Part shown: one piece after another, positions 286-56,927 of the stretch
Layout of the letters: each line of letters begins with the position of its first letter
Numbering within the stretch: position 1 is the first letter of the stretch
Assembly: GCF_036365525.1 (NCBI RefSeq)
Contig: NC_090387.1
Span: 90,251,691 to 90,315,690, forward strand
Reading direction: 5' to 3'
Source: Heterodontus francisci
Lineage: Eukaryota
DNA: 64,000 nucleotides
Made by a program: the position numbers and the translations under genes
Notes under the pieces: generated by a model
What the model was told of the DNA's origin: nothing
The model's database searches: none
Seen by the model: the letters and a program-made list of their open reading frames with translations, nothing else

Positions 286-2189
286 AATCCTGCAGAATAC
301 CACGAGCTGAACATACAAGTTTTGCTATTTATTGTTCACGCGTGTGCCCAGACCACGGAAGCGGAACTCTGGATGCATTTATTGCAATGTGAAAAAAAAA
401 CACGAGGAGACAGGTGACAAGAAATTGGCATTCCTTTCAGGTGCCTGGTTCTTCTATCATACTATTCAACTGAATTTGGAACAACCCCAACAATCTTTGC
501 CTACACTCCTTGGGCGGAATTTGTTTCTTTGCTGCACAGGCTGCGAGGCCGAGCACACACTGAGAAGCTTATCGGAAAATTGTGCGTTATTGTCCGCCAT
601 TTCCCATAAATTGAAATCAATGGACAGAAATGTATTGGCATTAACTCGAGGTTTTCCGATATATACCGTCTGCTGCATGAAATTACCGACCTTGGGAAGC
701 GAACAAAAACCCCAACACATCACCAAAGCTGACTCTTTCAGTAACTGCTTTCCCTGATGTATGTTCGACATTTGTTTTCCATTTGTATCCCGAGTCCTAA
801 TTCTTCTCCACATTTAAGTCGTCAAAGTCCCTGCAGTGAAAGAACGAGAGATGGATATAGATATAGATGGAAAAATATGAATACTTATATAATTAGATAC
901 GTATTATATAGAAATAGATGTAAATGTTATGACATTCTGAATGAATAAACACTGAACGTAGGATTCTAAGTGTAGTCCAGAAGGTGACTGCCGAGCTTCA
1001 AATAATCTCTTGTGTTCCACATTCTAATAATTGTTTGCAGAATTCTATTCTCTATTTACTTGTTTGAACATTGAAAGTGACCTGACTACAGTTGTCCCAG
1101 ACTCCCCTCTGTCACCCTGTGCTAATTCAATTCCATCCATTCTATAATTGCAACACAGATTTTCCAATTCCGCTCAATTTCATAACATGATCTAAATGGT
1201 TTTTACTATTTCTGCTGACACAAATGTGTAGCTTCCAGTATATAAACCTTGACAGCTGCCGGTTATTTCAAGCAGTAACTCCTGTCAATAGACTGCAGGG
1301 ATGAACTTTGATCCCTCATTTTTGTTAATTTTCTTGACCTGGAAATAGCACGGGGTTTCCATAACTTAATGGAATATTCACGGAACTCTCAGAGAACCGG
1401 CCTAAAGAGCGTTTTCAGCCATTTCCCCCATTTCTCCGGGGATTCTCGTAATCACGAAGCCAAGTGAGATCAGGAGACGGGTTGTAGCTCTGTCGAGTTT
1501 TGAAGACAGATTTTCGCAAAATACCGCTTGGCGTTAAACAACAAATGCATGTGGGGAGCACACAAACATATATCTGGTTGGTAGAATCACACTCCCCAAG
1601 GAATTTTCTTTACATTCATTTCAATGGAGGGAAAAGGCATCGGGTCCTGTTGCCAGCAGCGCCTTCCCCGGAGTTTCCATTCTGCGCTCAGGGCTGGCGA
1701 TGCTTAAAGCCGAGTCGGTAAAGACCAGACCCTCTTTTCACTGTCCCACAAACTGCTTATTTTTGTAAATAAGACTCATTCCGCCTGGTGGGCACTGATG
1801 GCGCAGGCAGACACAGGGCAACAGTGACTGATATCGCATCCATTCATTTAACGGATGGACTATGGAGTTGCAGTTTCCGTCCCTGCTCGCGTCCTTCTAC
1901 ACACGGAGAGCCCAACCGAACATAACAAGATATATATGTTTGTCCTTCAGTCCATGCAGGGCACAGCCGATGTGATGGCGCCTTATGCTGAACTCGAGAT
2001 AATGAATCCCTTGAAAACTCCAAGACCAAAGCATCAAGAAAGGACAGCGCATGCCCAGGTAGGGGTGAGTAGCCGATCAAAGAGACGCGAAATGACAGTA
2101 ATTAACAGGTAAAACGGTGTAATGTAAGAAATACCTTAATTGTAGTGTACTTACCGGTAATTCTGCAAGGCTTTAGCAATGTTAGTTAT

Positions 2190-3072: not shown

Positions 3073-3285
3073 ACCAAGCAAAGGACACCTGATAATAAGC
3101 TGACTTACGCTGCTGTATCTATGGCAGGGTCAAAGAAAACATCAAAGCCTAATGATAAGGATAAGAGCACGGAGTATGCTCAGCTACGGATTGAGAAAAA
3201 AGAGTGGACGTTATTTACATGGAACCGAAAACCACGTGATATTGGTGTCCCGTGCGGAACCCGTTGTATATGTGTGCATATCTAA
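3073..3285 (+). CDS. Last (cytoplasmic) exon of IgSF receptor gene A, with ITIM LTYAAV and ITSM-like TEYAQL
   Basis: Acceptor 'tttcacag' at 3065-3072, phase 0; TKQRTPDNKLTYAAVSMAGSKKTSKPNDKDKSTEYAQLR...; paralogous to 48746-48895. True stop may be TGA 3237-3239 if the A6 run at 3196-3201 lacks one base. Confidence 0.88.
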   Translation, partial: TKQRTPDNKLTYAAVSMAGSKKTSKPNDKDKSTEYAQLRIEKKEWTLFTWNRKPRDIGVPCGTRCICVHI

Positions 3286-18393: not shown

Positions 18394-19941
18394 TGTCATG
18401 CAGACCCTCACCTGCCAAGAATAAGGCATATTTATTTTGTCATATGAACATTGATTTTAAACTGTTGCTGGAGCGAGGAAATGACTTGTTAAACAGATCA
18501 GCTTTGGCTGGAAAAACATATATATACCAACAGACAGTGCTTGGAGAGACAAAGGACCATTCCCTAACACATTCGACCCACGATGGACATTGATCACTAG
18601 ACACTGAAGGTGAGGAAGCTCACATTCCAGGATGACTGCTAAGATGGCCGAATCCACAAACAGATGTGAACAAACCAGCAAGTCACATGACTAACCAACT
18701 GGGCATCCTGAGGTTATTTGAATTGTACAGAGAGTTTGAGAGGAAGACTGCTCCTGGACTCAGAAGACCTTTCCAGTCTGTTCCCATCTCTTTCTCACAA
18801 GCCTCTGGATCCACTGAGGTCACATGATCCTGAAGAGAGAAAAGTCTTCTACATCGAACAAGGTTTAAGAAGAATACTGAGCCCCAATGAAAAGCAAGAC
18901 CTATCTACAACCAAGGACTCTACAGCGATCTCGTAGAACAGTAACCAAAACCATCTTCAGATATTGCCTCAAACATTTCCATTTTATTTCTTCTGCTCTT
19001 TTCTGTCTCTACCTTCATGTGTGTATCATATACACATGTGTCCTCAGTACCTTGTTCTATGGCAGCGAGGCCTGGACAACGTATATCAGCCAAGTGCGAC
19101 ATCTCAATTCATTCCATCATCACTGCCTCCGGAGAATCCTTGGCATCAGGTGGCAGAACTGTATCTCCAACACAGAAGTCCTCGAGGCGGCCAACATCCC
19201 CAGCATATACACCCTACTAAGCCAATGGCGCCTGAGATGGCTTGGCCATGTGAGCCGCACGGAAGGTGGCAGGATCCCCAAGGACACATTGTACAGCGAG
19301 CTCGTCACTGGTACCAGACCCACCGGCCATCCATGTCTCCGCTTTAAAGACGTCTGCAAATGTGACATGAAGTCCTGTGACATTGATCACAAGTTGTGGG
19401 GGTCAATTGCCAGTGATCGCCAGAGCTGGCGGGCAACCATAAAGGTGGGGCTAAAGCATGGCAAGTCGAAGAGACTTAGCAGTTGGCAGGAAAAAAGGCA
19501 GAAACTCAAGGAGAGAGCCAAATGTGGAACAGCCCCAACAACCAATTTTATCTGCAGCACCTGTGGAAGAGTCTGTCACTCTAGAATTGGCCTTTCTAGC
19601 CACTCCAGGCGCTGCTTCACAAACCACTGACCACTTCCAGGTACTTACCCATTGTCTCCCGAGACAAGGAGGCCAAAGATATGCATGCTCACGTGGGCAC
19701 GTCGTATATCCATAGGCATTAACTGAATTAGAGTCTAAGATTAATAAATTTCAACATTTCTTCTTTAAATGTAAGAAAACCTGTTTGGTTGGTTTCTTTG
19801 CCTTATAATTGGAAAGCAGTGAACATGGATTCACTAAAGGGGAGCAAAAGAAACTGTGTGTTAAAAAATAAATCCCTGTATCGGTAAGACTAGGTGAAAG
19901 TTGCGAGGAACCCTAGACCCTTTTCTCACCTGGGCATAACA
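18394..19941 (+). repeat. 3' LTR with nested RTE insertion
   Basis: TG...CA ends; LTR homology resumes at 'atgcatgctcacgtggg' (19681). Confidence 0.85.
19027..19680 (+). mobile_element. RTE-clade LINE 3' end
   Basis: 'CVLSTLFYGSEAW...RLRWLGHVSR...RIPKDTLYSEL...CSTCGRVCHSRIGLSSH'. Confidence 0.9.
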
Positions 19942-36252: not shown

Positions 36253-36958
36253 CTTTTGGGCCTCCTTATCTCGAGAGACAATGGATACGCGCCTGGAGGT
36301 GGTCAGTGGTTTGTGAAGCAGCGCCTGGAGTGGCTATAAAGGCCAATTCTGGAGTGACAGGCTCTTCCACAGGTGCTGCAGAGAAATTTGTTTGTTGGGG
36401 CTGTTGCACAGTTGGCTCTCCCCTTGCGCCTCTGTCTTTTTTCCTGCCAACTACTAAGTCTCTTCGACTCGCCACAATTTAGCCCTGTCTTTATGGCTGC
36501 CCGCCAGCTCTGGCGAATGCTGGCAACTGACTCCCACGGCTTGTGATCAATGTCACACGATTTCATGTCGCGTTTGCAGACGTCTTTATAACGGAGACAT
36601 GGACGGCCGGTGGGTCTGATACCAGTGGCGAGCTCGCTGTACAATGTGTCTTTGGGGATCCTGCCATCTTCCATGCGGCTCACATGGCCAAGCCATCTCA
36701 AGCGCCGCTAACTCAGTAGTGTGTATAAACTGGGGATGTTGGCCGCTTCAAGGACTTCTGTGTTGGAGATATAGTCCTGCCACCTGATGCCAAGTATTCT
36801 CCGAAGGCAGCGAAGATGGAATGAATTGAGACGTCGCTCTTGGCTGGCATACGTTGTCCAGGCCTCGCTGCCGTAGAGCAAGGTACTGAGGACACAGGCC
36901 TGATACACTCGGACTTTTGTGTTCCGTGTCAGTGCGCCATTTTCCCACACTCTCTTGG
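36253..36958 (-). mobile_element. RTE-clade LINE 3' end, young
   Basis: ORFs 36708-36950 and 36303-36701 in the same frame separated by one stop; C-terminal CSTCGRACHSRIGLYSH. Confidence 0.92.
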
Positions 36959-37109: not shown

Positions 37110-38260
37110 CAGCTGCTGTGTGTAATGAAACCGGGCAGACCACCTGGCATCAACTTGGGAACCGGAAATGGCAATGGCACACCAAACCCTGCAGAATCCT
37201 CCTTACTAACATCTGGGGGCTCATGCCGCAATTGGGAGAGCTGTCCCACAGACTGGTCAAACAACAGCCTGACAGAGTCATACTCTCAGAATAATATCTT
37301 ACAGCCAATGCCCTGGACACCACCATCACCATCCCTGGCTATGTCCTGTCCCACCAGCAGGACAGACCCTGCAGAGGTGGCAGCACAGTGGTATACATTC
37401 GGGAGGAGTGGCCCTGGGAGTAATCGTTAACATTGAATCTAGACCCCATGAACTCTCGTGGCACGAGGTCAAACATGGGCATGGAACCCTGCCGATTATC
37501 ACCTGGCAGATGCACTGAGGGTCCATGACCAAAAGTACATCAGTAGCACCGCTACTGACTGAGCTGGCCGAGTCCTGAAGGACATATCTACCAGACTGGG
37601 GCTGTGGCAGGTGGTGTAGGAACCAATAAGAGAGAAAAATATGCGAAAGTATGTCCTCATCAATCCACCAGTCGTAGATGCATCCATGACTGTATAGGTA
37701 GGATTGACCAGCACACAGTCCTTGTGAAGAAGATGTCCTGCCTCCACACAGAGGATATATTCTATTGTGTTGTGTGGCACTAGAACCATACTAAATGGGA
37801 TAGATTCAGAACAGATCTCGCAGCTCCAAACTGGGCATCCAAGAGGAGCTATGGACCATCAACAGCAGCAGAATTGTATTCAACCACAATTGCACATCCC
37901 TCATTCTACCATTACCATCAAGTCAAGGGATCAACACTGGTTCAATGATGAGTGTAGAAGGGCATGTCGGCAGCAGAGCCAGGTATACCTAAAAATGAGG
38001 TGTCAACCTGGTGGAGCTACAACACAGGACTATTTGCATACCAAACAGCGGAAGCAGCATGCAATAGACAGGGCTAAGTGATCCCACAACCAACCAATCA
38101 AGTCAAAGGTCTGCAGTTCTGTCACATCCAAAACTATGGGTGTACCCGTACCAGATGGACAGCAGCGGTTCAAGAAAATGGCACCACCACCTTCTCAATG
38201 GCAATTAGGGGTAGGTAACAAATGCTGGCCTTCCCAACAATGCCCACATCCCATGAAAGG
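37110..38260 (+). mobile_element. Internally deleted LINE (family of 22475-23060 and 62695-63425), directly upstream of gene B
   Basis: EN 'tcctgtcccaccagcaggacagaccc', 'HWFNDECRRAC', tail 'ttctcaatggcaattagggg'. Confidence 0.8.
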
Positions 38261-38278
38261 ATAAAAATATTGCGAGCG

Positions 38279-38292
38279 GCGCCCTCTTCTGG
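38279..38292 (-). promoter_or_regulatory. CTCF-like motif ~170 bp upstream of the gene B start codon
   Basis: Minus strand CCAGAAGAGGGCGC vs consensus CCASYAGRKGGCRS (1 mismatch) in a CpG-retaining patch. Confidence 0.4.
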
Positions 38293-38457
38293 CGGATTTA
38301 CAACTGTTTCAGCAAAGGGACAACCAAAATATTTTCTGAACCCATACACAGGATGTTTCGCTTCTTTGAGGTGTTTGTCGCACTCCGACCCTTCGGCATT
38401 CTTACAAACCATCAGCCACTTCATGGTCTGTCGTTCCGAGTGATCAAGTGATTCAGA

Positions 38458-38512
38458 ATGTTAGCGAGTGTTGTACTTCAGTGCCTCTCTGTTTTGGGGA
38501 TCATATTCACAG
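38458..38512 (+). CDS. Gene B exon 1: signal peptide MLASVVLQCLSVLGIIFT
   Basis: agaATG, hydrophobic core, phase-1 donor AG|gtaaca; not in the ORF track. Confidence 0.82.
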
Positions 38513-38673
38513 GTAACAGTTCCCTCTATATCTTAATTTCTCGTTAAACCTGGCATTTATTTAGCTTTCCTTTGATATAACATGTTTCATTTTCCTTTGT
38601 ACATATTCCCTGATTCCCTTATTCTCGCGCTTTTCCTTCTGTAATACTATCTCATTATCATATTTTCCGATAG

Positions 38674-38994
38674 CTTGCGGCGAAACTTCAGTCAAAGTGA
38701 ATCAGTACCCTGAGAGTACGAGCATAAACCCGGGAAGAAATGTTTCCTTTCGCTGCACGCTTTCCATGTTTCAAGACAGCCCACCTGTGAATGTCTACTG
38801 GTGGAAGGAGGGTGATAATCAATATCTAAACACAGGACAGGATGACAGAAAATTAATTAGCGTTAAAACTGGATTCAAAGCCGTTCTTTGGATAATCAAT
38901 GTGAGTGTACAAGACGCAGGAGTATACTATTGCACTGTCACTCATCGAGGCAAAATAGTTGGAAACGGAACGGGATCCAATTTAGTTGTAACGG
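38674..38994 (+). CDS. Gene B exon 2: V-set Ig domain with germline J-like G strand
   Basis: tag|CT; VSFRC...VYWWK...LWIINVSVQDAGVYYC...GNGTGSNLVVT; donor G|gtaagt. Confidence 0.93.
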
Positions 38995-40005
38995 GTAAGT
39001 ATAAAAACAACGAATGAGATCCCTGTAACTGTAATATTTCACAATTCGGAACATTTATTGATTGTGCTTCGAAGGATTCACATCGCAAATTAAATTCCAT
39101 TGTTTTAGCATGCATACATTCAAATTGCACCTGTGACGGCTGCAATTATTTTTTGATGTGCTTCAGAATATTTCAGCAATATTGATCAAGACAAGCATTA
39201 TCTCTTAGTTGCTTGATTCCCAAAATACACAGTAAACGGTATACAGAAAATTATTGAAGTTAAAATTGCAGTATCATTTACGGAGGTGTATATCCCGACA
39301 GTGTTAGATACAAGCGCGGATCTGCCGCTGTGAGCACAGATATTGCCCTATTTGAGATTTATTTTGTCTCCGTTACGCGAGACTGACTGTTTCTATCTGG
39401 ATTCAGATTTTCCTAGCTCTAATTTAATCATCTATATGTCAGGATCTTTGAAAGGGCATATTACTAACAGTTAAATTTTACATTCTGTAGATTGAGCCTC
39501 CCATCCCATTTTTCTTCATGATTTTCACCTGTAAATAAGGTATCATCCTGGACCTTGGCGCCAGTGTCCCTCTAGTTTGGTAAATTATATTTTCTCATCA
39601 GTTCTTGTGTTCAACAGAGTTCGCAGCGGTACCGCGAAACAGGGCGAGCAACGCAAATTACATCCCGCTCAATTTTCTTTCCATTAGAATAGAAAATTGG
39701 GAGAGCTGTAAAAATCATCCGTTTTTTTCCCGGCGGTAACATTGCAATTACCGCCGAAATAATAGTGACACTTGTGAAAATCCGTTTAAGATGCAACTAC
39801 TGACAGCGCAAAGTGAACATCCATGCAGTGCCACAAAGACTCATCCCCTCACCACACCCTCCACCCCCAGCCCCGACCCCCCTCCGCCCACCGACCCACC
39901 CGAGACCTCCTCCAGTGTAAACTTTGAAACGGGCTGAAACAAAACGTTCGGTTGTTCACCTTGATTAATGTCCCATTAACATTATTGTCCTTCATTTTTT
40001 TTTAG

Positions 40006-40318
40006 CTCCGCCAACTCCACTGAAAATTAAATCTCAGCAACCTGAGAAGGATTCATCTGTTTCTCTGACTGTTGTGTGCGTGACATCTCCCTTTTATCCG
40101 GAGAGTATCAGCTTCACTTGGTATAAGGATGGCAACAAAACTACAACAGGGATAAATAACGTTATTGAACCTAATACCGACGGACTATATGAAGCCTCCA
40201 GCCCGCTTGCAAGAGACGCAGTTTGTCCCGCCCGGAACTGTTTATTCCTGCCTGGTCTCTCACAGTAGCCTCCAAATATCAGCCATGGCCACTTACACTG
40301 TCACCTATCACAGCACAG
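40006..40318 (+). CDS. Gene B exon 3: C1-set Ig domain, frameshifted at CCC 40202-40204
   Basis: polyT-ag acceptor; [23 protein letters not shown]...GLYEASS, then +1 frame RLQE...[10 protein letters not shown]; donor AG|gtgaga. Confidence 0.9.
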
Positions 40319-40339
40319 GTGAGATTTCAGATAAAATCG

Positions 40340-41400
40340 GAGAATCGTACAGCATCGAAAGAGGTCATTTGGCCTGGCGTGTCTGTGCGGCCTCTTTGAA
40401 AGAGCAGTCCAGTTTAGTCCCCATAACTCTGCAGATTAAACCCCTTTAAGCAACATGTCCAATTGCCTTTTGAAAATCCATGTATAAATTGCTTCCAACA
40501 ACCTTTCAGCTCGTGTATTCGACATCTCAGCAACCCCCGTGAGAAAAGAATTCCCCTCAAAATCCCTCTAGTCTTTTTGCCAGTAGGTTTAAACCTATGA
40601 TTGCCGGCTATCGACCCATTTCTTCAGAGAAATGTTTCTTCCTACTTGATTCACTAAAACCCGTCATAATTTTGAATATTTCTCTTCGATATCCCCTTAA
40701 TTTTCTGTGTTCTAATGAGTATCCACGTAGCTGAAGGCTCTCCTCCCTGTTAAAGCCGGTAAATCTCGCCTGTATTCTGTCCAAGACCTTGACAGTCTTT
40801 TAAAATGCGGTGCCCAGCATTGTGCACAATAATCTAACTGAGAACTAACCAGAGATGTGTAAACTTTAGCATGGCTTCCATGTTTTTGTATCCGATGCCT
40901 CTATTCACAAAACTAATTATCGCACAAGCTTTCCTTAACCCTACTTATTAACTTGCTCTGCCAGCTTCAAAGATTTGTAAATATGCACCCCTATCTTCTC
41001 CTGATTTAGTATGCCCCTCAAAATAGCACCATTTCCATTATACTACCTCTCCATGTTGTTTCACCCAAAGTGCACACTTCAGACTTATCCACATTGAATT
41101 GCACTTACCATTCGTCTGCCCATTTCCTCACTGTATTTTCTCCTATAGTCTGCTACTACCTTCTCACCATTTACTACGTTACCAATTTTGCATCATTAAC
41201 AATTTTCAAATTGTACTCCCGATATCAAGTTCAGATCATTTATGCATATCAGGTAAAGTAGTGGTCCTGATACTGATCCCTGAGGGAATCCCACTGCATA
41301 TTTCTCTCCTTTCAAAAAATCCACTCTCTGCCACCTATCACTTCGCAAATTGCATACCCAAGGTACCTCGGTGCATTAAATCCAATATGTCATAGCTCAA
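40340..41400 (-). mobile_element. Old CR1 LINE fragment in intron 3
   Basis: 'gtggtcctgatactgatccctgagggaatccc' (GIPQGSVSGP on minus); CR1 3' UTR near 40345. Confidence 0.7.
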
Positions 41401-41449
41401 CATTCTTTTGCTTCATAAAACTGTACCTTAATACAAAACTATTAACTAA

Positions 41450-41912
41450 AGATTTGCATTTATATAACGATTTTCACAACCACTGGACATCTCAAAGTGC
41501 TTTACAGCCAATGAAGTACTTCTGAAGTACAGTCACTGTTGTAGTGTAGAAAACGCAATAGACAATTTGCACACAGTAAGCTCCCACAAACAACAATGTG
41601 ATAATGACCAGATAATTTGTTCTGTGATGTTGATTGAGGGATAAATATTGGCTAGCACACCAAGGATAACTCCCCTGCTCTTCTTTGAAATAGTACCATG
41701 GGCTCTTTTACATCCACTTGAGAAGGCAGATAGGGGCTTGATTTAATATCACATCTGTAAGACAGCACCTCCAACAGTGCTGCAGTGCAGCACTCCCTCA
41801 CTAATACATTGGACTGTCAGCCTTATTTTTGTGCTCAAGCCCTAAAGTCGAATCTAAACCCAGAACCTTATAACTCAGCGGCAAGAGTGCTACCAACTAA
41901 GCCACGGCTGAT
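41450..41912 (-). mobile_element. Deu-type SINE, full length
   Basis: Minus strand 'tcagccgtggcttagttggtagcactcttgcc' head to 'tatataaatgcaaa' tail. Confidence 0.8.
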
Positions 41913-42027
41913 GTCAACTGCAATAACTGACTGAAAATATTTTGAATTCTCTATCTTTCAGGGTATTTTCTTATTGAATTAAACAGCATACAGGTTCAGA
42001 TTTATATATTTAATTTACATCTTGTAG

Positions 42028-42138
42028 GTGGTAAGATCACACATTACTTGCTGATTTCTCGATCCGCATGGGGCGTCTTTGTATTACTGATGCTGGGTAT
42101 CACGATTGTGAAGCGATGTTTCTCAAAGAAAAATAACG
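42028..42138 (+). CDS. Gene B exon 4: transmembrane exon GGKITHYLLISRSAWGVFVLLMLGITIVKRCFSKKNN
   Basis: ttgtag|GT acceptor, hydrophobic stretch followed by KR..KK stop-transfer, donor G|gtaaga, phase 1-1; Arg codon at 42060-42062. Confidence 0.85.
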
Positions 42139-42883
42139 GTAAGAAATAATTTAGTGTTTTTTTGCTAAAGCTAATACAAGTTTCAAACAGTTAGCCTGTC
42201 CCACAGGAGCAGAGGTGATTGTTGAATACAAAAGTTTTTCTGGGGTTTAAAATATATGAGATCCTACACAGGCACTCCAGGTTACCATTGTAGAGGTAGA
42301 TTCAAATTTCTGAAATGGAGTGGAATTTTCCAAGGTCTCCAGTGACTGACGGAGATTCGGGGTGGAATTGTATGGGCCTGCTAATGACTGGAATGAAGGC
42401 GGGGGGCCATAAAATATCGGCGGAAGGCTGTGGGTGGACTGCCCCTCACCTTCCCATCGCCATGCGATTTTTTGGGGGCAGGAAAGGCCTTCCTAACCAA
42501 AGGCCAATTGAGGATATTAAGTGGCCAATCAATAGCCAATTAAGGGCCTGTTCCCGTCGCCACTGGTATTCTGCCTCGAAATGGAGATATCTCAGTAAAA
42601 CAAGGTGACCTCCCTGCAGTCTTTGGGGATGGGGGGGGGGGGCTCTCTGTGGGCAATCTGTGTCCCACAGAGGGTCCCCAGTGGCAAAGGCCACCCATCC
42701 ATGAATAGTCCCTCCACCACCCCCCCCCCCCCCTCCTACATCTCCCCTCCCACCTGCCGAACTAGCCCTAGCGACCTCACCACTCTTACTGGAATCTGGG
42801 ACTCCAGCGATCAGCCTCTTTTCGTAACAGCAGTGGTCACCGCTCCCAGTGGTGATGCCAGTACTACTGAGCTGCCAGCTCAG

Positions 42884-44051
42884 TATCATTTCTAAAAGAT
42901 TTCCCACGAACGAGGTCAAACTGACTGGTCTGTAGTGGCTGAGCATGTCCTTACACACATTTTTGAACAATAGTGTAACACTTGCAATTCTCTGGCACCA
43001 CAGCTGTATCTAAGGAGCATTGGAAGATAATGGCCAGTGCATCTACAATTCTCTAAATATCTTTAGATACATCTCATCAAGTCCTGGTGACCTCGTCCTG
43101 CTTGGGGGTGGGATCCCGATCCTGAAAGGCACGGGAGCCACGGCGCAGGCAGTTAATTGCTTGAGGGTCTTAAATAGAGATGGGGTGGGGGGAGCGGGGG
43201 GAGATGCTCTCCAAAGGACTGAGGCATCGGAGCAATCTTACTTCTATTGTCGAAAGTGATCATAAACCAAGCAATTCTGAACAACAAATGTGATATCTAG
43301 GTCATGTTATAATTTACATTGAATCTACCAGAAGTGTCTTTCAAGGCCGAGTAAATATTCAATTTAAAGTCTTAAACTTCATTCGTCACCAGGAGTGCAG
43401 AACGATGGTGAAAGATCCAACTCTCCTGAACAGCTGGTAGGTTTTCATAATTCGTACTAATGTATTTCAAATGTAAATATATTCATAACGGAGTTGTAAT
43501 CTATTAAATGCAACAATTTATCACGTTTAATTCCCTGCTGCACTGATTCATACAAAATAGCACAGGCTGAATTCAGCGCTTATACAACAGACAGTTTTCT
43601 ACAGCACATAACTAGTAAAAGGGTGGTAAAAGAATGAGTGGGGCCACTTAGGGTCCTAAAAGGGATTTTATGCATGGAGGCAGAGGGCATTGCTGAGGTA
43701 CTAAATGATTACTTTGCACCTGTTTTTGCTCCCAAAGTCATGGTGAAAGAGGAGGTTGTTGAGACACTGGAGGGGCTAAAATTGACAAAGAGGAGGTATT
43801 AGATAGACTGGCAGTACTTTAAGTTGATAGGTCACCAGGACTTGATGAGATGTATCTAAAGATAATTAGAGACGTGAGAGTGGAAATTGTAGATGCACTG
43901 GCCATAATCTTCCAATGCTCCTTAGATACAGCTGTGGTGCCAGAGAATTGCAAGTGTTACACTATTGTTCAAAAATGTGTTTAAGGACAAGCCCAGCCAC
44001 TACAGGCCAGTCAGTTTGACCTCGGTTGTGGGAAATCTTTTAGAAATGATA
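42884..44051. repeat. Inverted repeat, arms 42884-43093 and 43829-44051 (CR1-derived), enclosing exon 5
   Basis: Near-identical reverse complements, e.g. 'agatgcactggccat.atcttccaatgctccttagatacagctgtggtgccagagaattgcaagtgttacactattgttcaaaaatgtgt'. Confidence 0.9.
43393..43436 (+). CDS. Gene B exon 5: short cytoplasmic exon GVQNDGERSNSPEQL
   Basis: caccag| acceptor and CTG|gtaggt donor; phase 1-0 bridges exon 4 to exon 6 exactly. Confidence 0.72.
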
Positions 44052-45005
44052 ATTCAGCACAGAATTAATAGTTCCTTGGTCAAATGTGGATTAAGCAAGT
44101 AAAGCCAGCATGGATTAGTTAAGGGCAAATAGCTAAGTTGTCTGAGCTTTTTGAGGAGGTAACAGAGAGGGTTGATGAGGGTAATGCAACAGATGTGCTG
44201 CACATGGACTTTCAAAAGGCCTTTGATTAAATGCGACGTGACAGGCTTGTCAACAAAGTTAGGCCCATGGAATAAATGGGACAGTAGCAATATGGATACA
44301 ACATTCACTGAGTGACAGAAAGCAGAGAATAGTTGTGAATGGTTGTTTTTGGACTGGAAGAAGGTATATAGTGGGATTCCCCAGCAGTTGGGACCTCTGC
44401 TTTTCTTGATACACATTAATGGCCTAGACATGGTTGTACAAGGAACAATTTCATAATTTACGGATGACACAAAACTTGGAAGCATTGTGAACTGTGAGGA
44501 GGTTAGTGATAAACTTCAAAAGCAAGCTGGTGTTTTGGGCAGACAAGTGGCAGATAAAATTTAATGCAGAAAAGTATGAAGTGATTCATTTTGGTAGGAA
44601 GAATGAGGAGAGGCAATATAAATTAAATGTTATGATACTAAAGGGGATGCAGGCTCAGAGGAACCTGGGGGTGCATGTGCACAAATCATGGAAGGTTGCA
44701 GGGCAGGTTGAGAAATAGAGTAATAAAGCATATGGATCCTGGGCTTCATAAATAGGGGCGCAGAGTACAAAACAAGGAAGTTGTAATAAACCTGTATAAA
44801 ACACTATTTCGGCCTCAACTGGAGCATTGTGTCCATACTTGTTGAAGAATGTGAAGGCATTAGAGAGGATACAGAAAAAAAATCACGAGAATGGTTCCAA
44901 GGTGAGGACCTTCAATTATGTGGATAGGTTAGAGAAGCTAAGTCTGTTCTCCTTGGAGAAGAGAAGATTAAGAGGAAATTTGAAAAAGAAGTTCAGAAAC
45001 ATGAG
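43610..45005 (+). mobile_element. CR1 LINE ORF2 fragment in intron 5
   Basis: 'WADKWQIKFNAEKYEVIHFGRKN', 'LFSLEKRRLRG'. Confidence 0.88.
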
Positions 45006-45009
45006 GCCT

Positions 45010-45677
45010 CAAAAGTCCAAGTGTATCAGGCCTGTGTCCTCAGTACCTTGCTCTATGGCAGCGAGGCCAGGACAACGTATGTCAGCCAAGAGTGACGTCT
45101 CAATTCATTCCATCTTCGCTGTCTCCGGAGAATACTTGGCATCAGGTGGCAGGACCATATCTCCAACACAGAAGTCCTCGAGGCGGCCAACATCCCCAGC
45201 TTATACACACTACTGAGTCAGCGGCGCTTGAGATGGCTTGGCCATGTGAGCCGCATGGAAGATGGCAGGATCCCCAAAGACACATTGTACAGAGAGCTCG
45301 CCACTGGTATCAGACCCACCGGCCGTCCATGTCTCCGCTTTAAAGACGTCTGCAAACGCGACATGAAATCCTGTGACATTGATCACAAGTTGTGGGAGTC
45401 AGTTGCCAGCGTTCGCCAGAGCTGGTGGGCAGCCATAAAGACAGGGCTAAAGTGTGGCGAGTCGAAGAGACTTAGTAGTTGGCAGGAAAAAAGACAAAGG
45501 CGCAAGGGAAGAGCCAACTGTGCAACAGCCCCGACAAACAAATTTCTCTGCAGCACCTGTGGAAGAGCCTGTCACTCTAGAATTGGCCTTCATAGCCACT
45601 CCAGGTGCTGCTTCACAAAGCACTGAGCACCTCCAGGCGCTTACCCATTGTCTCTCGAGATAAGGAGGCCAAAGAAG
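45010..45677 (+). mobile_element. RTE-clade LINE 3' end
   Basis: ORF 45228-45626, nearly identical to 36303-36701. Confidence 0.92.
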
Positions 45678-46439
45678 ATAGATATAAATGTTGTGACTTT
45701 CTGGATGAATTAAACACTGAACGTAGGATTCTAAGTGTAGTCCAGAAAGTGACTGCCAAGCTTCAAATAATCTCGTGTTCCACGTTCTAATAATTGTTTG
45801 CAGAATTCTATTCTCTATTTACTTGTTTGCACATTGAAAGTGACCTGACTACAGTTGCTCCAGACTCCCCTCAGTCACCCTGTGCTAATTCAATTCCATG
45901 CATTCTACAAATGCAACACAGATTTTCTAATTATGCTCAATTTCATAATGTAATCTAAATGGTTTTTACTAATTCTGCTGACGCAAATGTGTAGCTTCCA
46001 ATATATAAACCTTAACAGCTGCAGGTTATTTCAAACAGTGACTCCTGTCAATAGACTGCAGGGATGAGCTTTGATCCCTCATTTTTGTTAATTTTCTTGA
46101 CCTGGAAATTTCACGGGATTTCCATAACGTCAATGGAATATTCGCGGAACTCTCAGAGAACCGGCCTAAAGACCGTTTTCAGCCATTTCCCCCATTTCTC
46201 CGGGGATTTTCGTAATCACGAAGCCAAGTGAGATCAGGAGACGAGTTGTAGCTCTGTGGAGTTTTGAAGGCAGATTTTCGCAAAATAATGTTTGGCGTTA
46301 AGCAATAAATGCATGTGGGGAGCACACAAACATCAATCTGGTTGGTAGGATCACACTTTCCAAGGAGTTTTCTTCATATTCATTTAAATGGAGGGAAAAG
46401 GCATCGGGTCCTTCTGCACACGGAGAGCCCAACCGAATT

Positions 46440-47418
46440 TAACACAGAAACATAGAAAATAGGAGCAGGAGTAGGTCATTTGGTCCTTCGAGCCTGCTCC
46501 GCCATCCATTATGATCATGGCTGATCATCCAACTCAGTAGCCTGTTCCCGCTTTCACGCTATATCCTTTGATCGCTTTAAACCCAAGAGCTACATCTAAC
46601 TCCTTCTTGAAAACATACAATGTTTTGGCCTCAACTGTTTTCTGTGGCAGCAAATTCCCACAGGCTCACCACTCTCTGGGTGAAGAAATTTCTCCTCATC
46701 TCAGTCCTGAATGCTTTAGCCCATATCCTTAGACTATGACCCCTGGTTCTGGACTCCTCCACCATCGGGAACATCCCTCCTGCATCTACCCTGTCAAGTC
46801 CTGTTAGAACTTTGTAGGTTTCTATGAGATCCCCCCTCACTCTTCTGAACTCCAGCGAATATAATCCTAACCGACTCAATCTCTCCTCATACGTCAGTCC
46901 CACCATCCCAGGAATCAGTTTGGTAAACCTTCGCTGCACTCCCTCTATAGCAAAAACATCCTTCCTCAGATAAGGAGACCAAAAGTGCACACAATATTCC
47001 AGGTGTGGCCGCACCAAGGTCCTGTATAATTGCAGCAAGACATCCCTGCTCCTGTACTCGAATCCACTCACTATGAAGGCCAACATACCATTTGCGTTTT
47101 TACCACCTGTTGGACCTGCATGCTTACCTTCAGTGACTGGTGTACGAGAACACACAGGTCTCGTTGCATATTCCCTTCTCTCAGTTTATAGCCGTTCAGA
47201 TAATAATCTGCCTTCCTGTTTTTGCTACCAAAGTGGACATTTATCCACATTATACTGCATCTGCCATGCATTAGCCCACTCACTCAACTTGTCCAAATCA
47301 CCCTGAAGCCTCTCTGCATCCTCCTCACAACTCACCCTCCCACCCAGTTTTGTGTTATCTGCAAATTTAGAGATATCGCATTTAGTTCCCTCATCTAAAT
47401 AATTAATACATTGTGAAT
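46440..47418 (-). mobile_element. CR1 LINE 3' part, specific to copy B
   Basis: ORFs 46631-47155 and 47225-47428 ('ISKFADNTKLGG'); copy A empty site 'aaccgaacataacaaga' (~1914-1930). Confidence 0.9.
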
Positions 47419-47733
47419 AACATAACAAGATATATATGTTTGTCCTTCAGTCCATGCAGGGCACAGCCGATGTGATGGTACCTTATGCTGCACTCGAGAA
47501 AACGAATTGCTTGAAAGCTCCAAGACCAAAGCATCAATAAAGGACAGTGCATGCCCAGGTAGGAGTGAGTAGCTGAACAGAGAGACACAGAATGCCTGTA
47601 ATTAACAGATAAAACGGTGCAGTGTAAGAAATACCTTAATAGTGCTTTAATACTCTGTTGTACTTAACACTAATTCTGCAAGGCTTTGGCAATGTTAGTT
47701 ATGTCAGCTGTAGCTCAGTTGGTAAAACTCTGG

Positions 47734-48282
47734 GTTCATCCCAAGCAGCTCTGTAACACAGGAGTCTGTGCTCTATGGGCTGTTCCCAGGGACGCACACC
47801 GAGACAAACATCACCTGCTGCTGGAGGACTATCAATTCGGTGAAAGACGCCCTTTGGTCTGCCCGAAACCTGCTGGTCTTCCAGCGCAAAGAGTTGTCCA
47901 CCACCGAATGTTGCAGACTGGCACATTCCAAGGTCCAGGACTACGTGCTGAGGGACGCACTAATGCTTGGGGCAGCCGCAGCAAAGGCTCAATGGGGAAA
48001 GACCACAGTGTAAGGTCCCCCCACCAAGCTGAACTGAGGGGCTGGATCCATGGGAAACTCCTCGAACTGTATCGTTAATATTTTCATTTGCTGTAAATGT
48101 AAAATGGTTTTTGGCATGACAATTGTGAAATGGAAGGGTGAAGGGTTGTGAAGAAACTCATGTTAGTATAGAAGGAAACTGATCTCCCTTGCAATGTTTG
48201 TATTTTTTGGTGCTGTTTGAAACTGTTTGGCAATGTAATTTTTGCAGATTTTTATGAATAAAGTATATTTTGGAAATAAAAA
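47734..48282 (+). mobile_element. L1/Tx1-type LINE 3' end with poly(A) tail and 10-bp TSD, specific to copy B
   Basis: TSD aaaactctgg at 47724-47733 and 48283-48292; 'LYGLFPG...VKDALWSARNLLVF'; aataaa plus A-tail. Confidence 0.85.
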
Positions 48283-48745
48283 AAAACTCTGGCATCTAAC
48301 TCACAAGGTTGTGGGTTCATAGTCGCATCCTAGAGAGTTGAGCACAAAATGTAGTTTGACATTCCAGTGCAGTACTGAGAGAAATCTGCACTGTTGGGGG
48401 GTTCTGTCTATCGAATGAGACGTTGCACTGAGGCCTCCGTTTTTTTCTAAGGTGAATCCCGTGACACTATTTGAAGAGGAGGAGGGGAGTTATCCCTAGT
48501 GTTCCAGTCAATATTTATCCTTCAATCAACATCACTAAAACAGATTATCTGTTCATTAACATATTGCTGTTTGTGGAAGCTTGCTGTGAGCAAATCGGCT
48601 GCCGTATTTCCTACAGTACAAAGGCCCGATATAAATGCAAGCTTTTTCTTTGTTTTTTTTTCTTATTTGACTTACAGCGCTTAACTTTACATTGCAAACA
48701 ATTAACATATCGAACTAATTATATTCTCAAATATTGATTTCACAG

Positions 48746-48895
48746 ACCAAGCAAAGGACACACGCTGCTGGATCTATGGCAGGGTCAAATAAAACGGCAA
48801 AGCCTAATTATCAGGATAAGAGCACGAAGTATGCTCAACTACCGATTGAAAAACAAAGAGCAGACGTCACTGACACAGAACCGAAAACCACGTGA
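48746..48895 (+). CDS. Gene B exon 6: cytoplasmic tail lacking the ITIM (TKQRTHAAGSMAGSNKTAKPNYQDKSTKYAQLPIEKQRADVTDTEPKTT*)
   Basis: tttcacag| acceptor identical to copy A; open to TGA 48893-48895; not in the ORF track. Confidence 0.85.
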   Translation, partial: TKQRTHAAGSMAGSNKTAKPNYQDKSTKYAQLPIEKQRADVTDTEPKTT

Positions 48896-50051
48896 TATTT
48901 GTGTCCAATGCGGAACGCGTTTTATATGTGTGCAGCTCCAACATTTGATAATGTTGTTTGAACATTATCCAAACAACATGCCAAAGTAATAACAACAATT
49001 CGAGGGGAAGGGTGGAGATTACCAGTTTAATAACAGTCGACAATTAATAACTAACATCTATTTAGAAGAAGTCGCTTCTGCATGGTTGTCCCCTTCGCCT
49101 TATTTAAGAAATTTCGATAGAAGTAGATTGTCGAAATTCACTAACACGATGCCCAAATTCTGCTCCACCAGGTCCCAAACGTCCAAGGCCAGTGAACTGA
49201 TCCGTCCTCGCAGCTGTATTTAGAATTTACTGTCAATGGTGTTTGAATTCTGCAGCATCTTTCCAAAGGGTTGGATTTACAGCTGTTTCCCGATTGACAA
49301 ATAAAACCTATCATCTGTCAGGTACTAATAACCGAGTTATTTGAAAATTCATAGAAACGGGATATAATTTTCTGGGGTATATTTTCGACTTGGACGGTAG
49401 TGCAATACAGGATTTGCGCTCCGTTTGATTTGATTTTATATTGAAATTTGGCCTTAGGGATTGCATTGGGGTGAAACAAAATGAGCAAAGATCAATGAAT
49501 AAGCTATGGAGAAACAGATAATGAAACAACATTTTACGATTTCTGCGGATCCAGCTCTTTCCAAATTGCTTCATAGTGACTGAAGGAATTTTCAACTGTC
49601 GTCACCATTGTCAGGCAGGACAATTGGGAGAGGCAACAACAAACAGCATATTTCCACAAACAACAATTAAAATGTATGATTAGATAACTGTTCCAGTGTT
49701 GTTGGTTCAGGGATAACTATTGTCCAGGACACGAGGAGAACTTTGCTGTTCATCTGCATATAGTACCATGGGTTCTTTTACCATGAGAGGCCAGACGGGA
49801 ATTTGATTTAATGCCTCCTCCCAAAGACGGAACCTCTGACAGTGCAGCATCCCACAGTGCTACATCGACGTGTCAGCCGAGATTATGAGCTCAAGTCTTC
49901 AAAGCACTAACTTTACGACTCAGAGAGGAGAGTGGTACTGCTGAGCCAAGAGGGCCACTGATGGAGGAGGTCAAGGCTTACTACACGAGTAGAAAGACGT
50001 TAATTTATGAACTTACTGTGATCTATAAAACATTACACAGTACGGATAAGA

Positions 50052-53037: not shown

Positions 53038-53985
53038 ATGGCAGGAGATCTCAGACCCATGTTATGCTCCTCTTGCTCAATGTGGGAGCTCAGGGACACG
53101 GCTGATGTCCCTGACTCCTTCACGTGCAGGAAGTGTGTCCAGCTACAGCTCTTGTTAGACCGCATGATGGCTCTGGAGCTGCGGATGGACTCACTTTGGA
53201 GCATCCACGATGCTGAGGAGGTCGTGGATAGCACGTTTAGCGAATTGGTCACACCGCAGATTAGGATTGCTGAGGGAGAAAGGAAATGGGTATCCAAAAG
53301 GCAGAGAAAGAGCAGGAAGGCAGCACAGTTGTCCCCTGCAGTCATCTCCCTCCAAAACAGGTATACCGTTTTGGATACTGTTGGGGGAAATGGCTAACCA
53401 GGGGAAGGTAGCAGTAGCCAGGTCCATGGCACCGTGGCTGGCTCTGCTGTTCAGAAGGGCGGGAAAAAGAGTGGAAGGGCTATAGTCATAGGGGATTCGA
53501 TTGTAAGGGGAGTAGATAGGCGGTTCTGTGGTCGAAAACGAGACTCCCGAATGGTATGTTGCCTCCCAGGTGCACGGGTCAGGGATGACTCAGATCGGCT
53601 GCAGAACATTCTGAAGGGGGAGGGTGAACAGCCAGTTGTCGTTGTGCACATAGGCACCAATGATATAGGTAAAAAACGGGATGAGGTCCTACAAGCAGAA
53701 TTTAGGGAGTTAGGAGCCAAGTTAAAAAGTAGGACCTCAGAGGTAGTAATCTCAGGATTGCTACCAGTGCCACGTGCTAGTCAGAGTAGAAATGAAAAAA
53801 TAGTCAGGATGAATGCATGGCTTGAGAGATGGTGCAGGAGGGAGGGGTTCAGATTTTTGGGACATTGGGACCGGTTCTGGGGGAGGTGGAACTATTACAA
53901 ATTGGACGGTCTACACCTGGGCTGGACTGGAACCAATGTCCTTGGGAGTGCTTTTGCGAACGCTGTTGGGGAGGGTTTAAACTAA
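53038..53985 (+). pseudogene. CR1 ORF1 (CxxC..CxxC zinc finger, coiled coil, SGNH esterase); one in-frame TAA at 53395-53397
   Basis: CSSC...CRKC; VIGDSIVRG, HIGTND, DGLHL; ORFs 53038-53397 and 53434-53985 share a frame. Confidence 0.92.
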
Positions 53986-56927
53986 TGTGGCAGGGGGATG
54001 GGAACCAAATGAGGAGGGCAGTGGACAGTAAGGAGGTAGTAACTAAAGCCTGTAAGGAACTAGATAATGAAGTCAGTGTGACTAAGGGGAAGAGTAGGCA
54101 GGGAGCAGATGATGAACACAAAGGGACTGGTGGTCTGAGGTGCATTTGTTTTAATGCAAGAAGTGTAGTAGGTAAGGCAGATGAACTTAGGGCTTGGATT
54201 AGTACCTGGGAGTATGATGTTATTGCTATTACTGAGACTTGATTGAAGGAAGGGCACGATTGGCAACTAAATATCCCAGGATATCAATGTTTCAGGCGGG
54301 ATAGAGAGGGAGGTAAAAGGGGTGGAGGAGTTGCATTACTGGTCAAAGAGGATATCACAGCTGTGCTGAAGGAGGGCACTATGGAGGACTCGAGCAGTGA
54401 GGCAATATGGGCAGAACTCAGAAATAGGAAGGGTGCGGTAACATTGTTGGGGCTGTACTACAGGCCTCCCAACAGCGAGCGTGGGATAGAGGTACAAATA
54501 TGTAAACATATTATGGAAAGATGTAGGAGCAACAGGGTGGTGGTGATAGGAGATTTTAATTTTCCCAACATTGACTGGGATTCACTTAGTGTTAGAGGTC
54601 TAGATGGAGTAGAATTTGTAAGGAGCATCCAGGAGGGTTTTCTAGAGCAGTATGTAAATAGTCCAACTCGGGAAGGGGCCATACTGGACCTGGTGTTGGG
54701 GATTGAGCCCGGCCAGGTGGTTGAAGTTTCAGTAGGGGACTATTTTGGGAATAGTGATCACAGTTCCGTAAGTTTTAGAATACTCATGGACAAAGACGAG
54801 AGTGGTCCTAAAGGAAGAGTGCTAAATTGGGGGAAGGCCAACTATACCAAAATTCGGCAGGAGCTGGGGAATGTAGATTGGGAGCAGCTGTTTGAAGATA
54901 AATCCACATTTGATATGTGGGAGGCTTTTAAAGAGAGGTTGATTAGCATGCAGGAGAGACATGTTCCTGTGAAAATGAGGGATAGAAATGGCAAGATTAG
55001 GGAACCATGGATGACAGGTGAAATTGTGAAACTAGCTAAGAGGGAAAAGGAAGCATCCATAAGGTCTAGGCGGCTGAAGAAAGACGAAGCTTTGGAAGAA
55101 TATCGGGAATGTAGGACCAATCTGAAACGAGGAATTAAGAGGGATAAAAGGGGTCATGAAATATCTTTAGCAAACAGGGTTAAGGAAAATCCCAAAGCCT
55201 TTTATTCATATATAAGGAGCAAGAGGGTAACTAGAGAAAGGATTGGGCCACTCAAGGACAAAGGAGGAAAATTATGCGTGGAGTCAGAGAAAATGGGTGA
55301 GATTCTAAACGAGTACTTTGCATCGGTATTCACCGAGGAGAAGGACATGACGGATGTTGAGGTTAGGGATAGATGTTTGATTACTCTAGGTCAAGTCGGC
55401 ATAAGGAGGGAGGAAGTGTTGGGTATTCTAAAAGGCATTAAGGTGGACAAGTCCCCAGGTCCGGATGGGATCTATCCCAGGTTACTGACGGAAGCGAGAG
55501 AGGAAATAGCTGGGGCCTTAACAGATATCTTTGCAGCATCCTTAAACACGGGTGAGGTCCCGGAGGACTGGAGAATTGCTAATGTTGTCCCCTTGTTTAA
55601 GAAGGGTAGCAGGGTTAATCCAGGTAATTATAGACCGGTGAGCCTGACGTCAGTGGTAGGGAAGCTGCTGGAGAAGATATTGAGGGATAGGATCTATTCC
55701 CATTTGGAAGAAAATGGGCTTATCAGTGATAGGCAACATGGTTTTGTGCAGAGAAGGTCATGTCTTACCAACTTAATAGAATTCTTTGAGGAAGTGACAA
55801 AGTTGATTGATGAGGGAAGGGCTGTAGATGTCATATACATGGACTTCAGTAAGGCGTTTGATAAGGTTCCCCATGGTAGGTTGATGGAGAAAGTGAAGTC
55901 GCATGGGGTCCAGGGTGTACTAGCTAGATGGATAAAGAACTGGCTGGGCAACAGGAGACAGAGAGTAGCAGTGGAAGGGAGTTTCTCAAAATGGAGACGT
56001 GTGACCAGTGGTGTTCCACAGGGATCCGTGCTGGGACCACTGTTGTTTGTGATAAATGATTTGGAGGAAAGTATAGGTGGTCTGATTAGCAAGTTTGCAG
56101 ACGACACTAAGATTGGTGGAGTAGCAGATAGTGAAGGGGACTGTCAGAGAATACAGCAGAATATAGATAGATTGGAGAGTTGGGCAGAGAAATGGCAGAT
56201 GGAGTTCAATCCGGGCAAATGCGAGGTGATGCATTTTGGAAGATCCAATTCAAGAATGAACTATACAATAAATGGAAAAGTCCTGGGGAAACTTGATGTA
56301 CAGAGAGATTTGGGTGGTCAGGTCCATTGTTCCCTGAAGGTGGAAACGCAGGTCAATAGAGTGGTCAAGAAGGCATACGGCATGCTTTCCTTCATCGGAC
56401 GGGGTATTGAGTACAAGGGTCGGCAGGTCATGTTACAGTTGTATAAGACTTTGGTTCGGCCACATTTGGAATATTGCGTGCAGTTCTGGTCGCCACATTA
56501 CCAAAAGGATGTAGATGCTTTGGAGAGGGTGCAGAGGAGGTTCACCAGGATGTTGCCTGGTATGGAGGGCGCTAGCTATGAAGAGAGGTTGAGTAGATTA
56601 GGATTATTTTCATTAGAAAGACGAAGGTTGAGGGGGGACCTGACTGAGGTGTACAAAATCATGAGAGGTATAGACAGGGTGGATAGCAAGAAGCTTTTTC
56701 CCAGAGTGGGGGATTCAATTACTAGGGGTCACGAGTTCAAAGTGAGAGGGGAAAGGTTTAGGGGGGATATGCGTGGAAAGTTCTTTACGCAGAGGGTGGT
56801 GGGTGCCTGGAACGCGTTGCCAGCGGAGGTGGTAGACGCGGGCACGATAGCGTCTTTTAAGATGTATCTGGACAGATACATGAATGGGCAGGAAGCAAAG
56901 AGATACAGACCCTTAGAAAATAGGTGA
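53985..56927 (+). pseudogene. CR1 ORF2 (APE endonuclease and reverse transcriptase); one nonsense TGA at 54240-54242
   Basis: ATG overlaps ORF1 stop (TAATG); ITET*LK, GDFNFP, SDHSSV, QHGF, YMDFSKAFD, PQGSVLGP, FADD. Confidence 0.95.

Follow-up and report, generated by a model that had tools for sequence, protein, structure and literature searches.

What kind of gene occupies positions 38458-48895 of this stretch of horn shark DNA (Heterodontus francisci, contig NC_090387.1; 64,000 nucleotides (nt) with no N in the sequence, the whole of which we call the window), and is it still a working gene? The original prediction, made from the letters alone, had described a gene for an immune receptor that does not rearrange, in which a leader is followed by a variable (V) domain ending in a joining (J)-like strand, a single C1-set domain, a transmembrane (TM) segment and tail exons with tyrosine motifs, and had placed it in a multigene family of cartilaginous fish. 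That architecture and that placement hold up; what does not is the idea that the gene is intact. The locus is a tandem duplicate of the upstream gene for XP_067905935.1, and it is probably a young pseudogene. Both copies belong to a family of non-rearranging, SIRP-like and probably paired immune receptors so far found only in cartilaginous fish.

Results

A tandem duplicate with lesions in its C1 exon and signalling tail

Three lesions speak against an intact gene (Table 1): a frameshift in the C1 exon, an in-frame stop codon in a cytoplasmic exon that had been overlooked, and a deletion in the last exon that removes the tyrosine of an immunoreceptor tyrosine-based inhibitory motif (ITIM). The splice phases had been described as consistent, but in the assembly the C1 exon is one nucleotide too long and its two hallmark motifs, FYP...TW and Y-x-C-x-V-x-H, fall into different frames (open reading frames (ORFs) 40074..40268 and 40165..40449). 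The 330-amino-acid (aa) model offered as 'repaired' holds only with one base removed from this exon, a step left unstated in the reasoning behind it. All three listed RNA contigs that cross 40202-40206 omit one base there, and these contigs differ from the window elsewhere too. Since the frames on both sides of the break are open and conserved, the C1 lesion is either young or artefactual; if it is real, it kills the protein whatever the tail does.

The six-residue gap in the last exon is seen against eight horn-shark models and three from other sharks, and the DNA alignment with the last exon of the neighbouring gene agrees; one more tail tyrosine in this exon has been replaced by Asp. The TM helix is altered as well. 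The site of its arginine is held by Ala or Ser in inhibitory paralogues, and Arg occurs at the identical L-L-I-S-R position in the short-tailed models P0227/P0095 (horn shark) and P0005 (stingray). Measured against the best paralogue, aa identity is 100% in the leader, 96% in the V exon and about 95% in the C1 exon, compared with 69% in the TM exon and 92-100%, 83% and about 73% in the first, second and third cytoplasmic exons. These values would fit either a 5' half held alike by selection or gene conversion, or a 3' half that is free to drift.

The top match of the V exon and its cluster mate are horn shark XP_067905936.1 and XP_067905935.1 (P0151), both named automatically as 'tyrosine-protein phosphatase non-receptor type substrate 1-like'. 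The P0151 last exon lies near the start of the window, with 100% identity over 70 aa (3073-3282), so the gene that begins at 38458 follows it as the next copy in tandem, some 35 kb downstream. The 38458-48895 locus corresponds to none of the 15 horn-shark protein models that were set against the window.

Exon structure

All six exons that had been predicted are present on the + strand with canonical GT..AG borders. Their coordinates and borders stand; their number does not, since the natural paralogues P0151, P0162 and P0225 carry a 36-38-residue tail segment encoded by an extra cytoplasmic exon whose counterpart lies at 47451-47564, so that the family gene has seven exons rather than six. This sixth family exon, together with its flanking intron sequence, matches the neighbour exon at 1951-2064 with 94% DNA identity, and the 83% aa identity given above is to P0164. 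It offers a second possible donor between 47558 and 47559, and each of the two donors has its isoform model in the paralogue (P0162 and P0223). That four of the six predicted exons were missing from the ORF track fits a 60-aa cut-off, for only the V and C1 exons give ORFs of at least 60 aa.

Exons were translated and searched singly, the two frames of the C1 exon as separate pieces, and full-length database paralogues (P0151 and others) stood in for a joined spliced model. The first exon is identical to P0162 and P0163 over 18 aa. The second is recognised by Pfam as ig (3.1e-12) and as V-set (3.8e-9) across the whole model (positions 1-109), and its closest relative is P0151. The V domain runs without interruption, within this one exon, into a J-like strand of the pattern G-x-G-S-x-L-x-V that holds an N-G-T glycosylation sequon inside its G-x-G bulge. 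As predicted, there is neither a V-J intron nor a recombination signal sequence (RSS): a scan of 38400-40400 on both strands with consensus motifs gave no CAC-heptamer with a 12 or 23 (+/-1) spacer and a nonamer.

The C1 hallmarks that had been described are likewise real, as both motifs are present in the third exon and its first 69 aa match Pfam C1-set (6.2e-9). Ahead of the break this exon is 95.6% identical in aa to P0162, and its best single-domain match in the PDB is SIRP-alpha d3 (26.1 bits). It is the one C1 exon between V and TM, and the single C1 that had been contrasted with SIRP-alpha (V-C1-C1) and NKp30 (V only) is therefore borne out. The best paralogue of the TM exon is P0151 (tblastn gives 59% at most), and the first cytoplasmic exon shares 12 of 13 aa with P0164/P0225 and 11 of 11 with P0224 over a shorter overlap.

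Table 1. Exons, lesions and altered residues of the 38458-48895 copy, with the exons of the neighbouring gene that lie in the window.
Feature	Position	Strand	Description
Exon 1	38458..38512	+	ATG and 18 codons, most of the signal peptide; split leader ending in phase 1
Exon 2	38674..38994	+	End of leader and whole VJ-type V domain; 321 nt, phase 1 to 1
J-like G strand	38961..38990	+	G-N-G-T-G-S-N-L-V-V
Exon 3	40006..40318	+	C1-set domain; 313 nt in the assembly, 312 needed
Frameshift	40202..40204	+	CCC run, one base more than in paralogue transcripts
Exon 4	42028..42138	+	111 nt; stalk, TM helix and basic juxtamembrane stretch
CGA Arg codon	42060..42062	+	Outer third of TM helix, L-L-I-S-R-S-A-W
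Exon 5	43393..43436	+	First cytoplasmic exon; 44 nt, phase 1 to 0
Family exon 6 (second cytoplasmic), absent from the original prediction	47451..47564	+	ITIM-like V-P-Y-A-A-L at 47478-47495
In-frame TAA	47538..47540	+	Neighbour gene has GAA (Glu)
Last exon	48746..48895	+	150 nt, ends in TGA; T-K-Y-A-Q-L, like an immunoreceptor tyrosine-based switch motif (ITSM), at 48824-48841
18-nt in-frame deletion	between 48761 and 48762	+	Six residues gone, including the tyrosine of the L-T-Y-A-A-V ITIM
Neighbour P0151, second cytoplasmic exon	1951..2064	+	tblastn and DNA alignment
Neighbour P0151, last exon	3073..3285	+	tblastn match to P0151

Spliced RNA from a paralogue

Contigs from three small runs of one sample in one study, whose RNA nature had been guessed beforehand, were placed on 38400-43500. 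An 822-nt contig (record 1 of run X1) lines up in order with 38441-38510, 38672-38993, 40005-40321 and 42042-42133, the last stretch following 11 divergent letters, and its joints coincide exactly with the predicted leader-V, V-C1 and C1-TM junctions. The joint 38510>38672 (GT..AG, cut +2) recurs in contigs of runs X1 and X2, and over the V-C1 intron five of six bins have no depth, the sixth showing a trace from one run. Apart from this trace and a highly repeated element at about 41450-41900, no intron has any depth. Spliced contigs together with near-empty introns show that the material is complementary DNA.

Compared with the window, the 822-nt contig differs at 7 of 322 bases in V and at 9 of 317 in C1. 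Leaving out the one difference in the frameshift run, the other 15 are simple substitutions, four synonymous and 11 non-synonymous, and all 11 of the latter give the P0162 residue. Its TM piece departs from the window at 19 of 92 bases and starts with the G-E-N-N of P0162. We therefore reject this contig as a transcript of the 38458-48895 copy itself, and of the contigs listed from the three runs, every one that covers V or C1 departs from the window in sequence. What the RNA proves is the exon model of the paralogue P0162, which supplies the spliced junctions that had been set as a test for any paralogue; on transcription of the 38458-48895 copy, or on its extra C, it gives nothing firm.

When the V exon is set against the P0162 transcript (38676-38993), six of seven base differences alter the amino acid, although counts of this size are too few to separate diversifying selection from relaxed constraint. 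In the C1-TM intron a short interspersed repeat (41450-41900) is covered by RNA contigs to depths in the tens of thousands in each of the three runs; its copies are many and divergent, and joints occur inside it. Rfam gave no match at gathering score over 38000-49500.

A receptor family of cartilaginous fish

An exhaustive HMMER search with the V exon reached 745 proteins at E<=0.001, of which 148 lie at E<=1e-10. With P0151 as query, all 51 matches at E<=1e-5 come from sharks, rays, skates or elephant shark (one of the 51 rows prints no species, and its accession falls between two Callorhinchus entries), and a profile built from 26 members finds 70 matches at E<=1e-10, every one of them chondrichthyan. 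Ten lower-scoring V matches were looked up: five are chondrichthyan, one is from an eel and four are from turtles or a viper. These turtle and viper relatives have three or four V domains and ITIM tails, with no clear C1 domain.

In a tree of V domains (103 rows, after 10 domains below 60 bits and 12 identical duplicates had been taken out of 125), the V domain of the window falls into a four-row horn-shark clade with P0151, P0162 and P0163 (100/99). This clade is nested in one of 15 rows (100/94) that also holds catshark, bamboo and epaulette shark, smooth-hound, skate and ray, and other horn-shark members fall in distant subfamilies. The tree thus points to old subfamilies with recent species-specific tandem duplication. 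Besides its place in this tree and the high identity of its V and C1 exons, the 38458-48895 copy shares the exon order and phases of the family.

Across the 26-member alignment the Cys pairs and the Trp are invariant in both domains and the C1 motifs are present. The N-G-x-G of the J-like bulge is conserved in at least 90% of members (N116, G117, G119), V124 is invariant, and the P-P-T-P linker from the J strand to C1 is conserved. Pfam recognises one C1-set stretch in P0151, and the AlphaFold2 model of this protein, made with the 26-member alignment, places V and C1 mostly above 90 in predicted local distance difference test score, with a strand at 120-126 after the J-like bulge; residues 229-262 form a TM helix, and the tail is disordered.

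A crude motif script was run on 95 representatives, counting only proteins with at least 200 bits against the family hidden Markov model. It sorted 43 into a class with ITIM/ITSM-like tails and 11 into one that combines a short tail with a charged residue in or at the TM segment; six have a short tail without such a residue, 12 fall into other classes, and in 23, fragments or possibly secreted forms, no TM or C1 motif could be recognised. Some members, P0047 and P0141 among them, unite a TM Arg with an ITIM. The anatomy of the family is that of paired inhibitory and activating receptors. The skate protein P0010 (Amblyraja radiata, 493 aa) has two near-identical tandem C1 domains, a V-C1-C1 layout reached through duplication of an internal exon, and so matches the domain count of SIRP-alpha independently.

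The family is not new to the databases. Its members are in NCBI, under a dozen or more inconsistent automatic names, of which SIRP-alpha-like is the commonest; others are SIRP-beta-1-like, Ig lambda-like, kappa-like, tapasin-related-like, B7-H6-like, CD276, PD-L1-like, major histocompatibility complex (MHC) class II alpha-like and beta-like, T-cell receptor (TCR) beta-like and 'uncharacterized'. A full-text literature search, in which key immunology journals (J Immunol, Immunogenetics) are thinly covered, returned no paper on it. Within these limits, the family is already in public annotation as inconsistently named gene models, with no description found in print.

Other features of the window

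In the neighbouring gene, the P0151 last exon has near its end (3195-3285) a 1-nt deletion relative to the 38458-48895 copy and P0162, so that beyond the ITSM-like motif the frame is shifted and the P0151 model closes with 27 residues of unrelated tail, with ITIM and ITSM intact. The 64-kb window showed no further host gene. An apparently intact long interspersed nuclear element (LINE) lies at 53434-56927 (+) and may be a young element: ORF1 (183 aa) has a GDSL/SGNH esterase-type domain (Lipase_GDSL_2, 2.3e-14), and the unbroken ORF2 (894 aa) has endonuclease and reverse-transcriptase domains (RVT_1, 1.4e-32). A fragment of a retroelement of the long-terminal-repeat type occupies 16509-18080 (+) in several ORFs, one with an integrase H2C2 zinc domain (1.2e-15). 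Three copies of one repeat-borne ORF with a Cys/His-rich, LINE-like C-terminal end and no Pfam match lie at 18887-19630, 36303-36701 (-) and 45228-45626, and one of them sits in the intron between the first and second cytoplasmic exons.

Discussion

Decaying duplicate or living receptor

How would an intact member of the family work, and what has the 38458-48895 copy lost? In known paired receptors ITIM and ITSM tails recruit SHP-1/2, and a TM Arg pairs with an adaptor carrying an ITAM (immunoreceptor tyrosine-based activation motif). An intact member of the shark family has a split leader, a VJ-type V domain, one C1-set domain, a TM helix and a tail assembled from three small exons, carrying one ITIM-like, one ITIM and one ITSM-like motif. 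Its V domain would bind a ligand, Src-family kinases would phosphorylate the tail tyrosines, and phosphatases of the SHP-1/SHP-2 type would be recruited, damping activation of the cell. The short-tailed sister genes with a TM Arg would pair with an ITAM adaptor and give the opposite signal. This scheme is modelled on SIRP, KIR, LILR and PILR. In KIR, LILR and PILR, which form tandem clusters, activating members are derived from inhibitory ones and pseudogenes are frequent; an activating copy retains its ectodomain, acquires a basic TM residue and, through stops or deletions, is left without the ITIM tail. The 3' changes of the 38458-48895 copy follow this course from inhibitory gene to activating partner, and the copy was possibly shifting from the inhibitory to the activating type when the C1 frameshift struck.

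Several observations weigh against reading the locus as a young pseudogene. The frameshift amounts to one base in a three-base homopolymer, with open and conserved frames on both flanks, and could be a slip of the assembly. The RNA contigs that lack the base come from paralogues (record 1 of X1 agrees with P0162 at 11 of 11 non-synonymous sites) and are silent on the true sequence of this copy. Contigs also lose rare variants, and the tissue sampled is not known, which makes missing copy-specific RNA weak evidence. The stop in the sixth exon lies after V-P-Y-A-A-L, a better fit to the ITIM consensus than the A-P-Y-A-E-L of the paralogues, and a product with one ITIM is conceivable. Since the models P0163 and P0226 do without exon 6, skipping of the stop-bearing exon is conceivable as well. 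The signalling scheme, finally, is drawn from sequence motifs.

It is possible, with appreciably lower probability than decay, that the gene still works and owes its extra C to an error of the assembly or to a rare allele. The product would then be a V-C1 receptor with a TM Arg and a shortened tail, which would either stop after one ITIM or, by skipping exon 6 in the manner of P0163, hold T-K-Y-A-Q-L only, and it would act beside the inhibitory neighbours as a new partner that activates or gives a mixed signal. One base in the CCC run is the sole lesion of the ectodomain, the frame past it is open and 87.5% identical to paralogues over 40 aa, and every splice site is intact; the Arg stands where short-tailed P0227 and P0005 have it, and TM Arg and ITIM coexist in some members, such as P0047 and P0141. 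However, three further changes all strike the signalling tail, the locus is matched by 0 of 15 compared horn-shark models and by no identical RNA contig among those listed, and the divergence of TM and tail greatly exceeds that of V and C1, which is what relaxed constraint would lead one to expect. A young pseudogene is thus the reading we favour. Being probably dead, the copy adds little by itself; it shows how the cluster evolves, through tandem duplication, a conserved or homogenised ectodomain and the rapid loss of signalling motifs, and it calls for caution when functional receptor genes are counted from an assembly.

Relationship to known receptor families

Where does the family belong? 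Non-rearranging genes that join VJ to C1 are material for models of how antibodies and TCRs arose, and UrIg, UrIg2, NKp30, SIRP and PRARP are cited in this connection in PMC12227049 and PMC10751288. The shark family is a large one of this layout, with members in sharks, rays and a chimaera, and is expressed in at least one copy (P0162). Against PDB sequences, the family profile scores 67.8 bits with lambda VL-CL, 65.7 with SIRP-alpha d1-d2, 65.2 with kappa VL-CL and 61.2 with UrIg2 V-C1; against extra C1 domains it scores 45.4 with SIRP-alpha d3, 33.9 with UrIg2 C3 and 26.7 with IgG CH3. A C1-only profile, built from five natural V-less models, gives 51.8 bits with SIRP-alpha d3, 46.5 with SIRP-gamma d3, 41-49 with light-chain constant domains, 41.9 with IgNAR C1 and 41.4 with B7-H6. 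By sequence, then, the family would be about equally distant from Ig light chains, SIRP-alpha and UrIg2, and SIRP d3 appears nominally the closest C1 domain, by a few bits. Foldseek, VIA-align and the ESM Atlas confirmed the two-domain V + C1 fold of the P0151 model and gave no discrimination, as light chains, TCR chains, B7-H6, NCAM, MHC class II and others tie at Z 13.4-15.1.

Perhaps the family is the cartilaginous-fish orthologue of the tetrapod SIRP genes (SIRPA/B/G), with a second C1 lost or never gained. SIRP-alpha-like is the commonest NCBI name, SIRP-alpha d3 is the best single C1 match of the third exon and of both profiles, including the V-P-P-T start of the domain, and the two share a logic of VJ-type V domain, ITIM tail and partners with a basic TM segment. 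We nevertheless give orthology less than even odds. The margins are thin, with light-chain constant domains close behind SIRP-alpha d3 and lambda VL-CL ahead of SIRP-alpha d1-d2, the family has one C1 rather than two, skate P0010 with its internal duplicate being the exception, and its members carry about a dozen other automatic names.

A more far-reaching scenario, which we hold to be rather unlikely as a whole, is that the family represents an independent ancient VJ-C1 lineage of cartilaginous fish, sister to SIRP, UrIg and the rearranging receptors, a relic from before the recombination-activating gene (RAG), and that this copy is caught in mid-switch from inhibitory to activating. If true, members would switch by gaining a TM Arg and would then lose their ITIM exons one by one.

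That the family belongs to PRARP is improbable. PRARP, reportedly described by Fu et al. in J Immunol in 2019, is said to be an unrearranged V(J)-C-TM receptor known from chicken and further vertebrates other than mammals, and to have been put forward as a remnant of the precursor of antigen receptors; by this description it resembles the shark family as a joined-VJ receptor of the immunoglobulin superfamily with a V-C-TM layout. The parts of PMC11599192 and PMC10751288 available to us group it with NKp30, SIRP, CD8, CD79 and NITR as a joined-VJ gene. Yet the 70 profile matches at E<=1e-10 include no bird, reptile, amphibian or bony-fish protein, and the V relatives outside the chondrichthyans, so far as they were looked up, are reptile receptors with several V domains and no clear C1 domain. 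Several members are named Ig lambda-like or kappa-like and Fab light chains are the top Foldseek matches, but a germline-joined Ig light-chain or TCR gene of the cartilaginous-fish kind is ruled out for practical purposes by the TM exon and ITIM/ITSM tail exons and by the lack of an RSS or remnant in 38400-40400, and is further opposed by V domains that form their own family in the tree and by the N-G-T sequon inside the G-x-G bulge.

NKp30 (NCR3) has an unrearranged VJ-type V domain, a TM arginine of the activating type and no C1 domain, and is MHC-linked; the C1-set exon rules out identity with it, and unlike NKp30 the shark family carries inhibitory tails in most of its members. KIR, LILR and PILR are built on C2/I-type or single V domains, in contrast to the VJ + C1 antigen-receptor layout found here. 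UrIg and UrIg2 (PMC12227049; PDB 9dmx) have an unrearranged single-exon VJ, a split leader, C1-type domains and elasmobranch hosts in common with the family. As far as the available text of PMC12227049 goes, UrIg is secreted and consists of VJ with three C domains, UrIg2 of the nurse shark has VJ, nine C domains and a TM segment, and ITIM tails or paired forms are ascribed to neither (the text has 0 occurrences of 'ITIM'). The number of C domains rules out identity with either, and the shark family differs in its one C1 and its tyrosine-motif tails.

SIRP (PDB 2wng, 4i2x) offers a close parallel in organisation. In the available text of the SIRP review PMC12975943, the words evolution, fish, shark, chicken and ortholog occur 0 times. 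The likenesses are an unrearranged V domain with a J-like strand, C1-set domains, of which SIRP-alpha d3 is the best single match, a TM segment, and inhibitory members with ITIM tails beside short-tailed partners with a basic TM residue (43 and 11 of 95 here, by motifs). In contrast to SIRP, the shark family has one C1 in place of two, a sequence apparently no nearer to SIRP than to Ig light chains, a tail of three short exons with ITIM and ITSM-like motifs and, in our searches, a distribution confined to cartilaginous fish. The family to which the probably decaying 38458-48895 copy belongs is SIRP-like in its layout and, probably, in the way it works.

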